The notes: generated by a model not told the origin, from the sequence alone. A stretch of 64,000 nt of DNA from Zygnema circumcarinatum SAG 698-1b (GCA_037447605.1 CM074812.1:2294001-2358000); one strand, 5' to 3'. Shown: positions 9,078-24,512, numbered from the stretch's first letter. A program made the numbers and translations.

Positions 9078-12000
9078 ATGGCAGCGACAAGGTGAGCGTC
9101 CGGGCGGCAGGGGCCGTACAGGGGAGGAGCGCGCCTATCCTGCAACGCCACGTGTGCCCTAAAAACTTGCATTACTGACGCCGCTTAGGGGCAAGGGAGG
9201 GTTCAGGGTCGACAAAGGAAGGACGCTCTCCCTCGTTTTAGGGTTTTTGCTCGCCGTCGCTGCGGCTAATGTACCGGTGGCGTATTCAGTGATAATAAAA
9301 TCCTCAGAAAGTAAAGCCCCTGAATCCTAAAAACCCGCATACTCTAGAGTCAGACTACCGAAAACCCCAGTATCCTGACATTCTAATAGCCCTAAAACTC
9401 CAAAACCTTGAAACTACTAAATCGAGTACCTCTCAGTTTCCAACAACCCAGACCTCTGAAATTTTTAGTGCTGGAATGCCTGAACCCCAACGCCCCCGAA
9501 CCCTAAAACTTTCAGAAACCCTAAAACCATAAGGAAATCGGAAACGCTAAACCCTAAATCCCTGGAAAGCTGTGATGGGTCGTCGTATGCAACCTGCTAT
9601 TTTCACACGTGTGAACGCAGGAAGTGCCCTCCTTATCGTGAAATCTTACTTGAAAGATCCGTACAAGTCGTCGGAGCTCCAATATTGGACGGCCAAGAAC
9701 ACCAACTGCAGCACATGGGAATTCGTTACCTGCAATGAGGATGGATACGTACAATCTTTGTGAGTGAACTTTGCCTCCCTCCCCCCCTCCCTCTCCCTCT
9801 CCCTCTTCCTCCCCCCCTCCCTCGCCCTCTCCCTCTCCCTCCCCCTCACTCTATCCCTCTCCCTCTCCCTCCCCCTCCCTCTTCCTCTCCCTCCCCCCTC
9901 CCTCTCCCTCTCCCTCTCGCTCTCCCTCCCCCCTCCCTCTCCCTCTCCCTCCCCCCTCCCTCTCCCTCTCCCTCCCCCCCTCCTTCTCCCTCGTCCTCTC
10001 CCTCCCCACCTCCCTCTCCCTCTCAAAAGTGACGTAACTCAAAATCTCAAAATTCGATTAATTATCTGTTGGAAGTCTTCATCGAGCTTCCTGTAATCCA
10101 TGATTCGTGCAGGAGAGGAATGCTCTTGCATTAATTCTCATTTAAAAAAAAGGGAAGAAACGAAGGAATTGACTGAATGGTTCACTGAATTTCCATTCAC
10201 AATTGCGTTTTTTTTTGCATTCAGATCAATTTCAAACATACCATTTCGGGGAACAATTGCATATTCTGTTGGCGACTTGAGCATGCTCGAGACTCTGTGA
10301 GTTATTTCGAGCTGTACGCACTTTTGAGTTTTTGTTGCATTTGGTATTTCACCCTAAAAACCCTAAAAACCCTAAAAACTCTAAAAACCCTCGTAGCTTT
10401 GGTTCCGTCTTTTCCGTCGCTTCTTTGGTTTTCTATGAGACCTTGTTTCAAAAACCAGCAATTTTTTTTTTCATCTCTAGCACGACATTGACCTTCTCGT
10501 CCACTTTGTCGCAGAATTCTTTCGAACTTGAGTTTAGGGGGGAGCATTCCTCTCGATATTGTCAAGCTCGCAAATCTGCGGACATTGTGAGTCCCTTCCC
10601 TGCTCATCAACCTTTTTCGCTTCGGTAAAGAGGGAGGGAGGGAGGGAGGGAGGGGAGGGAGGGGAGCGAGGGCGGGAGGTAGGGAGAGAGGGAGGGATCG
10701 AGGGAGGGGGGAGAGAGGGAAGGAGGGAGGGAGGGAGGGAGGGAGGGAGGGAGGGAGGGAGGTCGTTTGTAAGAAATTTCTAGACTGGACCAAGTTGCAT
10801 AGTTCAGGCCCTTCACAAGTCGCACTTCACCTTTTAAATCTGAATTTCAACTCCTTATTGACCATTTTTCCACTTGAATTTGACCTAAATTGGGTTAATC
10901 AGTTCCAGTAATCAGTTCCTTTTCCTTCTATCTGCAGGGACCTCTCGGATAACTCCTTGTACGGAACCCTCCCAGGCGCAATTGACAGACTCAAGAATCT
11001 GGAAATTTTGTGAGTTTTGAAACGGTTGAAATTTTTAGATATTGCCTGTTTACTTTTTTACAATGTATAGGTCGCAGACGTAACTTGGGCCGCTGACCTC
11101 CAATGTTGATTGAAGTATCACGTTTGCTTTCTGAACATACGCAATTATAAGTCTATCATTCATTACCACTTCGCCAATTTTAAATGAAAGGTCAATTTTA
11201 GATAAAAACTAAAACCCTTAAAGACCCTAAAAACCCTAAAAACCCTAAAAGCCGATGAAACCTGGATGGTTTGTACACCCCTATAGGAGTCAACGAAAAT
11301 TTCATGTTCGCACTAATTCTGTTCCAAAACCCTAAACCCTAAACCATAAACCCTAAACCCTTCACCCTAAACCCTAAACCTTAAACCCTAAACCCTAAAC
11401 CTTAAACCCTAAACCCTTCACCTTAAACCCTAAACCCTTCACCCTAAACCCTAAACCTTAAACCCTAAACCCTTCACCTTAAACCCTAAACTCTTCACCC
11501 TAAACCCTAAACCCTAAACCCTAAACCCTAAACCCTAAACCCTAAACCCTAAACCCTTCACCCTATACCCTAAACTCTAAACCCTAATCCCTTCACCCTA
11601 AACCCTTCACCCTAAAACCTAAACCCTAAACCCTAAACCCTACACTCTTCACCCGAAACCCTAAACCCTAAACTGATTGCTTCAATTTTTATGGTTTGCT
11701 TACATGGTGTGCCCACCCCATAGTTTTCCTTTAAGCTTTTCGTCACTTGGCGATGAAGTATGAAGTCTTGGCATTCGCCAAATTCTCTTAAGAGTCACGC
11801 TCACCCATGGGAGGGCGCCACGTGGCATGCCACATTTTTTCTTAATTGAAAAGGTTGACCCAAAGTATTTTACTGTTGTTTGTTGGTGGCAGAGATATGC
11901 ATTCAAACAATTTCAGTGGAAGTATTCCGGGATCGATTGGCGCCCTTAGTAAATTGCAAGAACTGTGAGTTTTAGGGTTTTTAAGGGTATTTAGGGTTTT

Positions 12001-24000: not shown

Positions 24001-24512
24001 TTGGACCTTCCTTTTCCTTTCCTTTTCCTTTTCCATTTCCTTTCCTTTCCGTTTCTCAACATTGTTCCCTCCCTCCCTCCCTCCCCTCCCCTCCCTCCCC
24101 TCCCTCCCCCGCTCCCTCCTCCCCTCCCTCCCCTCCCCTCCCATCCCTCCCGCCCTCCCTCCCCTCCCTCCCCCGNNNNNNNNNNCCTCCCTCCCTCCCC
24201 TCCCTCCCTCCCTCCCTCCCTCCCTCTCTCTCTCCCTCCCTCACTTCATACTATGCGTGCGTGCGTGTCTGCTTGCAGGTTTGTTTGACCACAAATGATT
24301 TGGGAAACTACGTTCCCCCTTGCAGTATTCCGGGCTGCACTGGAAAATTCACTGTTCGTCGTAATACGACCTGTAATTCACTCGCCAATTCATGCTTTGC
24401 GAGCTCACAGAACAAGTTCGGAACTTGCAACGCTGATCCATGCACGGAAACGCTCCTTACGACACTCGTCGGGAAGACCATTTGTACTCCTCCGAGGACG
24501 ACATGTTTTTGA
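9078..24512 (+). CDS. Secreted LRR - EGF - papain-like (Cys>Ser) - 2xEGF - 4xLysM-like protein, paralog B (~1065 aa, 25 exons)
   Basis: Exons 9078-9091; 9207-9310 (signal peptide TLSLVLGFLLAVAAANVPVAYS); 9621-9759 (LRRNT); 72-nt LRR exons 10225-10296, 10938-11009, 11893-11964, 12894-12965, 13858-13929, 14798-14869, 15431-15502, 15900-15971, 16179-16250, 16547-16618; 16853-17205 (LRR+EGF); papain exons 17699-17878, 18591-18817, 19341-19484, 20003-20222 (GAVQGVKNQGKCKASW, LNHAVVIVGY, YWLIRNSWGTNWGDSGY); EGF exons 20700-20903, 21251-21394; LysM-like exons 22187-22305, 22557-22646, 23124-23231, 23574-23771, 24279-24512 (TGA). Total 3198 nt, in frame, no internal stop. Confidence 0.9.
11331..11672 (-). 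repeat. Intronic telomere-like (CCCTAAA)n array
   Basis: AAACCCT units with CCCTTCA variants, in the intron after LRR exon 11009. Confidence 0.9.
11971..12470 (+). repeat. Higher-order telomere-derived minisatellite (TTTTTAGGG / GAAAAAGGG / AAGTGTATTTAGGG blocks)
   Basis: Repeated ~50-nt blocks, e.g. AGAAAAAGGGTTTTTAGGGTTTTTTAGGGTTTTTAAGTGTATTTAGGGTTTT, immediately after LRR exon 11964. Confidence 0.85.
13357..13463 (+). repeat. (GTGAC)n / TGACG pentamer microsatellite
   Basis: gtgacgtggcgtgacgtgacgtgac...; a related array lies at 30409-30490. Confidence 0.85.
13622..13742 (+). repeat. (TATCG)n microsatellite
   Basis: atcgtatcgtatcgtatgatatcg...; a second copy lies at 44485-44524. Confidence 0.85.
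17699..20222 (+). other. Papain-family (C1A) mature protease domain within paralog B; nucleophile Cys replaced by Ser; no I29 prodomain
   Basis: Oxyanion Gln codon 17866-17868. C-K-A-S-W in place of C-G-S-C-W (Ser codon TCT 18596-18598). His codon 20045-20047 (LNHAV). Asn codon 20105-20107 (RNSWG). Confidence 0.9.
19505..19672 (+). repeat. ~17-bp AT-rich minisatellite (TTTTAAGAAAAAAGAGT)n in a papain-domain intron
   Basis: About 10 tandem units visible after the exon ending at 19484. Confidence 0.85.
22187..24512 (+). other. Tandem LysM-like repeats (about 4) at the C-terminus of paralog B
   Basis: YTVPAGFPVSCSAIRDINGMTAENFKADNLNLNCSEL; YSVTKVDTCNSIKALFKL...NPTLNCSNLQPFQQVCV; HDVATNETCNSILKLF...FYAINPGLYCDRL...QQVCL; FTVRRNTTCNSLANSCF...KTICTP. 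These match the Cys-containing eukaryotic LysM pattern YxVxxGDTCxxIA...NPxLxCxxLxxGQxlCv. The last repeat is degenerate. Confidence 0.75.

Follow-up and report, generated by a model that had tools for sequence, protein, structure and literature searches.

A window of 64,000 nucleotides from Zygnema circumcarinatum SAG 698-1b (GCA_037447605.1 CM074812.1:2294001-2358000; "window" refers throughout to this whole stretch, and positions are counted from its first letter) holds at 9078-24512, on the plus strand, a gene that is transcribed and encodes a non-membrane, secreted-type mosaic glycoprotein of this streptophyte (zygnematophyte) green alga. From the N- to the C-terminus, its predicted product displays a signal peptide, an LRRNT cap, 12 leucine-rich repeats (LRRs), a Cys-rich cap with a first EGF-like module (EGF1), a papain-family domain, two further EGF-like modules (EGF2 and EGF3), and four LysM modules.

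A first-pass annotation had proposed an in-frame model of 25 exons and ~1065 residues for this gene. Exons were here derived independently from stop-free segments and all frame-keeping GT/AG pairs of the plus strand between 9078 and 24512, and the resulting model reproduced the exon count and the open frame, every junction being GT-AG, with a corrected coding sequence (CDS) of 3216 nt for 1071 residues. This length corresponds to an exon 19 acceptor at 20700, while an acceptor at 20502 would give 3414 nt and 1137 residues through the gain of a Ser/Pro-rich linker; a third in-phase option, at 20424, also adds such a linker. Position 20700 is tentatively preferred over 20502 because the run of CT hexamers preceding it is the microsatellite that fills other introns of the gene, and because it offers a long polypyrimidine tract before its CAG. 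The acceptor of exon 3 can similarly be set at 9621 or, in frame, at 9570 (17 additional residues), and the junction between exons 21 and 22 (22305>22557) was located by eye. The exons are the following:

9078..9091, plus strand, exon 1: start codon, MAAT and the first two nucleotides of an Arg codon; GT donor at 9092
9189..9310, plus strand, exon 2: signal-peptide-like hydrophobic segment, residues ~15-43
9621..9759, plus strand, exon 3: LRRNT_2 cap (PF08263)
10225..10296, plus strand, exon 4: LRR1, 72 nt, phase 2-2
10515..10586, plus strand, exon 5: LRR2
10938..11009, plus strand, exon 6: LRR3
11893..11964, plus strand, exon 7: LRR4
12894..12965, plus strand, exon 8: LRR5
13858..13929, plus strand, exon 9: LRR6
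14798..14869, plus strand, exon 10: LRR7, an irregular repeat; N gap 15750-15759 in downstream intron 10
15900..15971, plus strand, exon 11: LRR8
16179..16250, plus strand, exon 12: LRR9; its last 30 nt form the loose end before exon 13 in RNA contigs of four out of four runs
16547..16618, plus strand, exon 13: LRR10; present in spliced RNA contigs with exons 14-16
16853..17205, plus strand, exon 14: LRR11-12, Cys-rich LRR C-cap and EGF-like module 1; present in RNA contigs
17699..17878, plus strand, exon 15: linker of ~30 residues, start of the papain domain, Gln19 (CAA, 17866-17868)
18591..18817, plus strand, exon 16: papain N-lobe; Ser (TCT, 18596-18598) in the Cys25 column; CNTSG in place of CNGG
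19341..19484, plus strand, exon 17: middle of the papain domain; its first 30 nt form the RNA contig loose end after 18817
20003..20222, plus strand, exon 18: papain C-lobe; His159 (CAT, 20045-20047), Asn175 (AAT, 20105-20107) and Trp177
20700..20903, plus strand, exon 19: EGF-like module 2
21251..21394, plus strand, exon 20: EGF module 3, phase 1-1; N gap 21453-21462 in downstream intron 20
22187..22305, plus strand, exon 21: first half of LysM1
22557..22646, plus strand, exon 22: remainder of LysM1 and the initial strand of LysM2
23124..23231, plus strand, exon 23: LysM2
23574..23771, plus strand, exon 24: LysM3; N gap 24176-24185 in downstream intron 24
24279..24512, plus strand, exon 25: LysM4, divergent, followed by a short tail with Cys and by the stop codon (24510-24512)

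The joining of exons 1 and 2 produces the N-terminus MAATRGKGGFRVD, which resembles the contiguous MALMGKTGFRTD of a neighbouring paralog described below. None of the three N gaps touches an exon; all lie in GA/CT-rich low-complexity sequence, and the intron phases agree on both of their flanks (2, 1 and 0 for introns 10, 20 and 24, respectively). These gaps may nonetheless hide an in-frame exon, since, for example, a further 72-nt LRR exon would keep the frame. Module boundaries are phase-symmetric, with LRR exons being 2-2 (72 nt each) and the papain block as well as the EGF2 and EGF3 exons being 1-1, and the introns inside the LysM block are of phase 0. Such symmetric boundaries fit the pattern expected of a mosaic protein assembled by exon shuffling.

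Transcription was evaluated in public data. Six runs of one organism, belonging to three studies, contained 35-50% of the sampled words of 16800-24512, in contig sets of transcriptome size. RNA contigs from four runs (three studies) were placed on 16500-18858, and in all four they skip 17206-17698 and 17879-18590 exactly at the GT..AG sites of the model. The joints 17205>17699 (exons 14 to 15) and 17878>18591 (exons 15 to 16) are exact, exon 13 is carried by the same contigs, and the loose ends agree at 30 of 30 bases with the last letters of exon 12 on one side and the first letters of exon 17 on the other. Contig depths range from 23 to 86 in the four RNA runs. Because spliced contigs and loose ends match exons 12-17, the model's junctions E12>E13 to E16>E17 are confirmed, and the LRR/EGF and papain blocks belong to one mRNA.

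The contigs also reach well beyond these junctions. Contig X1, of 3982 nt, extends 1056 nt ahead of exon 13 and 2094 nt past exon 16, where the model requires 923 nt of CDS and 1461-1659 nt, respectively, the surplus fitting untranslated regions (UTRs). In a second assembly, contig X2 presents 1059 nt ahead of exon 13, and X2 and X4 extend 1031 and 1055 nt beyond exon 16, a segment in which the remainder of the papain domain requires just 364 nt. Past the stop codon at 24510-24512, the transcript span leaves room for UTR only. Judging from the contig spans, together with splice logic, the exons for EGF2, EGF3 and the LysM modules probably lie downstream of the papain domain in the same transcript. 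Thus, regarding the possibility raised in the first-pass annotation that the LRR, papain and LysM blocks are separate genes, RNA joints from exon 12 to exon 17 place the LRR and papain blocks on one mRNA, and the later joints, and with them the LysM block, are backed by transcript span.

Exons 15-18 together supply the whole of a mature C1A domain. The Peptidase_C1 profile (PF00112, cut-off 20.7 bits) is matched by exon 16 with 32.6 bits over profile positions 26-87 and by exon 18 with 69.1 bits over positions 154-216, and many solved C1A chains are matched by the papain exons. At the junction between exons 15 and 16 the spacing is exactly that of papain (VKNQGKCKASWVYA versus the canonical VKNQGxCGSCWAF), and Ser512, the Ser of the ASWVY motif, aligns to Cys25 of dionain-1 and to the equivalent Cys of bromelain. 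Its TCT codon (18596-18598) is one transversion away from TGT, and RNA contigs of four runs show 0 letter differences over exon 16, this Ser included. The oxyanion-hole Gln19, His159, Asn175 and Trp177 are retained within the motifs KNQG, LNHAV and NSWG, and the cleft motif CNGG reads CNTSG. An I29 prodomain is absent, with no Pfam match on exon 15 and ~35 residues between EGF1 and the mature N-terminus. These observations bear out the earlier description of a C1A papain with an altered catalytic site and without I29. By its sequence, the domain belongs to the C1A fold but not to the active cysteine peptidases, because Ser occupies the position of the Cys25 nucleophile. The best match of exon 18 in the PDB is silicatein alpha (E 7e-17), which reflects likeness to cathepsin L and not a special relation, since cathepsin K scores nearly equally.

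The N-terminal arm is of plant type. The LRRNT_2 cap passes its Pfam profile (PF08263, 24.3 bits versus a cut-off of 20.7) and precedes 12 plant-type LRRs in exact 24-residue register, ten of them being encoded by single 72-nt phase-2 exons, where ~11 repeats had been counted previously. The repeats fit the tandem 24-residue LxxLxLxxNxLxGxIP plant-specific LRR pattern, and a profile built from exon 14 and its relatives matches the ectodomains of FLS2, GSO1, MIK2, PEPR1, BRI1, LRX (LRX2/8) and PGIP. An alignment of relatives shows that exon 14 ends in a conserved Cys-rich cap followed by an EGF-like hairpin module. Searching a protein library with exon 14 returned 12 matches and no papain fusion, the library evidently lacking the window's own protein; the matches comprise one bacterial surface protein, small LRR proteins with Cys-rich/EGF ends (one from Mesotaenium endlicherianum), and one LRR kinase.

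Of the three EGF-like modules reported initially, EGF3 passes PF00008 (23.9 bits versus a cut-off of 21.5) and EGF2 is recovered by homology to EGF3 (z 8.2), while EGF1 is reached by EGF profiles of Pfam at sub-threshold level only. Foldseek comparison of the AlphaFold2 (AF2) model of exon 14, with a predicted local distance difference test (pLDDT) value of 77.5, with the PDB provided no match at E<=0.001; the short local matches, none of them significant, fell mostly on EGF modules from reelin, ADAM22, selectins and integrins. The C-cap and EGF-like module (NC...QRS..C.AFC[ND]A..G.CGG.G.C...C.C..GY; 16853-17205 in the window and 2872-3264 in contig L001 of another alga, see below) constitutes a conserved cassette, which also ends small LRR proteins secreted by algae, among them Mesotaenium ME000369S06458, and occurs in one LRR receptor kinase (P0009).

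At the C-terminus, 240 residues are organised as four modules sharing the pattern [YHF]-x-V ... [TS]-C-[NS]-[SA]-[IL] ... N-x-x-[LP]-x-C-x-x-L. Neighbouring modules are related to each other, with z scores of 4.8 for LysM1-LysM2, 8.1 for LysM2-LysM3 (BLASTP E 2e-5) and 4.9 for LysM3-LysM4 (BLASTP E 0.008). LysM3, in exon 24, matches the solved chitinase A LysM 5bum (E 5e-4), both Cys included, and the profile of the four modules matches 5bum (E 2.7e-4) and 4pxv/5ylg (E 1.7e-3), with no other significant solved match. The top named Atlas clusters for exon 24 are all LysM (scores 0.82-0.88), which is taken as a lead only. The remaining LysM exons gave no Pfam LysM match, modules 1 and 2 being split by introns and scanned unspliced. 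Taken together, the four modules appear to be disulfide-bearing LysM of the plant chitinase A type, the fourth strongly diverged. LysM modules bind chitin or peptidoglycan.

Features of the whole chain are in line with an extracellular location. A single Kyte-Doolittle peak above 1.6 is found in the entire protein, corresponding to the N-terminal segment encoded by exon 2, and the 1071-residue model contains no transmembrane (TM) segment, glycosylphosphatidylinositol-like tail or kinase, nor any hydrophobic stretch beyond its N-terminus; the absence of TM helix and kinase noted at first inspection is thus upheld. The predicted protein contains 50 Cys and 28 N-glycosylation sequons.

Upstream of the gene lies a head-to-head paralog on the minus strand, occupying 216-7793 of the window, with its start near 7793. 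It shows a signal peptide, an LRRNT at 6948-7283 (PF08263, 35.6 bits), 13 single-LRR exons, an LRR-cap/EGF exon at 683-1042, and a first papain exon at 216-437 that continues off the window start, so that its catalytic-site exon falls outside. Both genes are 41-62% identical, exon by exon, and their start codons are ~1.3 kb apart, suggesting that they share a bidirectional promoter region. A further relative was detected in L001, a genomic Logan contig of 4054 nt (SRR9302961) from another alga, in which an LRR exon and an LRR-cap/EGF exon are followed by papain exons reading GCWAY, and hence with the catalytic Cys intact. The gene is therefore one member of a multi-gene family, whose starting function looks, on such sequence comparison, more like that of a lectin-tethered protease than that of a decoy, since the catalytic Cys is kept in at least one relative.

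Repetitive sequence occurs within and around the gene. Degenerate (TTTAGGG)-like, telomere-type units are located directly after the stop codon (24550-24900), and CCCTAAA-like units in intron 2 (9320-9560) and intron 14 (17363-17394). The copy at 17363-17394 reaches contig depths of hundreds to thousands in RNA runs, which indicates that this telomere-type repeat is present in many transcripts. A microsatellite occupies 18859-18963. Farther downstream, a 6.8-kb (TCTCCC)n array at 47863-54705 contains ~1159 copies with 80% matches, its GC and AT skews both being close to -1; this hexamer also takes up several introns of the gene studied here. The region at 40-44 kb of the window is strongly purine-rich on this strand.

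Considering these features together, the reading that we put forward, with about an even chance of being right, is that of a secreted, glycan-tethered protein whose papain domain would bind instead of cutting. The LysM array would tether the protein to N-acetylglucosamine (GlcNAc) polymers, which might be wall material, the peptidoglycan of bacteria, or chitin from parasitic fungi or chytrids, and the LRR solenoid and the papain cleft would bind proteinaceous ligands. The Ser-bearing member would act as a pseudoprotease, binding without cutting because Cys25 is Ser and the CNGG motif is altered, and on the same chassis the relatives that keep Cys would do the cutting. Its setting would be the cell surface or the extracellular matrix, either facing microbes or in wall or mating biology, and the protein would carry no signalling part of its own. 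Its purpose could be that of (i) an inhibitor trap or decoy, (ii) a competitor or regulator of active paralogs, or (iii) a component of matrix and adhesion. The non-cutting, decoy-like binding role of the Ser-bearing member appears compatible with the data; the alternative offered in the first-pass annotation, that of a wall-bound lectin-like protein, is no less likely.

Several points weigh against this reading of a tethered, non-cutting binder. Pfam, structure and homology tests were run exon by exon and not on the spliced full-length protein. The signal peptide is predicted from the hydrophobicity of the N-terminus alone, and the joints from exon 17 onward, which link the papain domain to EGF2, EGF3 and the LysM modules, derive from RNA contig spans and splice logic. 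As for the ~4 LysM-like repeats of the first-pass annotation, matches to solved LysM structures uphold them, but the Pfam LysM score on exon 24 is 14.3 bits (E 0.039), under the cut-off of 20.9, and the AF2 model of this exon, with pLDDT 50 from a four-row alignment and the strand-helix-helix order expected of the beta-alpha-alpha-beta LysM fold, is too poor for use. Moreover, exon 25 (LysM4) alone matches nothing and is recognisable only through LysM3. The repeats thus neither fail profile and structure tests nor fully pass them. Finally, the Ser-His-Asn triad and Gln19 are intact, which makes some hydrolytic or other catalysis possible.

Among the alternatives, the least improbable, while still lying on the unlikely side, is a matrix protein with a structural or developmental part in adhesion, the remodelling of the wall or surface events of conjugation, comparable with dead-cathepsin matrix proteins or with a C1A protein of Volvox that is induced by pheromone and by wounding. 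A secreted chain built of many modules, rich in Cys and glycans and spaced by EGF units, would suit such a role, as would the Ser/Pro-rich rod that becomes possible if acceptor 20502 is used, and the gene is expressed in unchallenged public runs of three studies. On the contrary, the chitinase-A-type LysM modules point to GlcNAc polymers, which are not known to make up a major part of the wall in these algae. The parallel with Volvox concerns VcPap-11, a C1A protein induced by the sex pheromone (PMC2474614, citing Amon et al. 1998).

The conservation of Gln19, His159, Asn175 and Trp177 in an open reading frame that is intact over 25 exons and expressed, together with silicatein alpha, a Ser-His-Asn enzyme of papain fold, as best solved match of exon 18, would also suit an active enzyme, either a serine-type hydrolase or one with another activity as in silicatein, brought to glycan surfaces by the LysM array. 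This is nevertheless judged unlikely: papain with Cys25 changed to Ser is essentially inactive, Ser-type SERA and testin-like homologues count as non-peptidases, the backbone-binding CNGG motif is changed to CNTSG, and the silicatein match amounts to the general cathepsin-L likeness discussed above.

Somewhat more doubtful is an integrated decoy, in which the dead papain domain would bait microbial protease inhibitors, the LRRs would sense the resulting complex, the LysM modules would sense glycans and a partner receptor would signal; a simpler version, to which the same doubt applies, is an inhibitor sponge shielding active paralogs. Apoplastic papain-like proteases are targets of pathogen inhibitors, and tomato Rcr3 is guarded by the LRR receptor Cf-2. 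The presence of a non-cutting papain domain beside LRRs on one chain, with a head-to-head paralog 1.3 kb away, is reminiscent of such arrangements, but the sequence contains no TM segment, kinase or signalling module, and the same chassis keeps the catalytic Cys in at least one relative, so that the architecture was not originally a decoy. An equally doubtful variant is a paralogous decoy placed on the same microbial surface as its Cys-bearing relatives, where it might trap papain inhibitors of microbial origin or present LRR-bound ligands to a membrane receptor. Very improbable is a decaying, functionless duplicate whose frame happens to be still open, given that, despite the lost nucleophile and GG motif in a duplicated gene family, 25 exons stay in frame with canonical splice sites, the transcript is correctly spliced and expressed at the depths given above in four runs, and nothing is missing from the remaining catalytic-site and disulfide residues or from the Cys patterns of the modules.

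Three modules that are hallmarks of surface immunity in land plants, namely LRR ectodomains, apoplastic papain-like proteases and LysM glycan binders, are found here on one secreted chain in an alga near the land-plant ancestor. The gain from this single locus is modest, namely an expressed Ser-type member head-to-head with a paralog. The family as a whole is expanded, unstudied and built from phase-compatible exon cassettes, and it constitutes a testable system for studying the way in which recognition and proteolysis outside the cell came together prior to the takeover by receptor kinases. Its Ser-for-Cys members raise the question of whether, beyond land plants, pseudoproteases are used for binding or as decoys. 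If the paralogous-decoy reading were true, the algal lineage nearest to land plants would possess, in this protein, an extracellular equivalent of immune receptors with integrated decoys.

Comparison with known systems situates this architecture. With tomato Rcr3/Cf-2, the likeness consists in an apoplastic papain-like protein being brought together with an LRR ectodomain; however, Rcr3 and Cf-2 are two proteins, the former catalytically competent and the latter membrane-anchored and signalling via partners. Ectodomains of LRR receptor kinases and receptor-like proteins, LRX and PGIP share with it the LRRNT_2 cap and the 24-residue plant LRRs, encoded here as one LRR per 72-nt exon. Unlike LRR receptor kinases, receptor-like proteins and LRX, the protein is devoid of TM helix, kinase and extensin tail, and its LRR block is capped by a Cys-rich/EGF-like module. 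With the LysM/CBM50 modules of fern and horsetail chitinase A (5bum, 4pxv/5ylg), it has in common the Cys positions and the N-P-x-L-x-C-x-x-L-Q motif, but it differs from chitinase A in carrying four tandem LysM at the C-terminus of a non-chitinase, the fourth diverged, their sugar binding being a prediction.

Regarding the papain domain, silicatein alpha, the top solved match of exon 18, has in common a papain fold with Ser-His-Asn in place of Cys-His-Asn, and this comparison yields no indication of silica chemistry here. Further Ser-for-Cys homologues of papain fold are Plasmodium Ser-type SERA, testin and TINAG. In contrast to these, the substitution in the present protein is an independent one in an algal lineage, and it lies between EGF modules in a chain with LRR and LysM arms.

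The closest likeness is to algal fusions of C1A and LysM, as in Chlamydomonas and Volvox VcPap-11, which equally combine a papain-family domain with several LysM on a secreted chain. The pheromone-induced C1A protein of Volvox reportedly carries chitin-binding repeats. Peptidase_C1 with LysM is reported for Chlamydomonas (PMC2728734), and fusions of peptidase C1A and LysM appear in a listing for non-vascular Archaeplastida, with their loss noted for vascular plants (PMC6362431, supplementary file 5). The first-pass annotation knew of no described protein with the present architecture, and the literature search likewise found no paper describing LRR, C1A and LysM on one chain, nor an entry with this combination among the listed architectures. 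Relative to the algal fusions, this protein adds the LRRNT, 12 LRRs and three EGF-like modules, is devoid of a prodomain and presents Ser for Cys. The gene is thus an extension of the algal C1A-LysM lectin-proteases by an LRR-EGF arm, with Ser at the nucleophile position.

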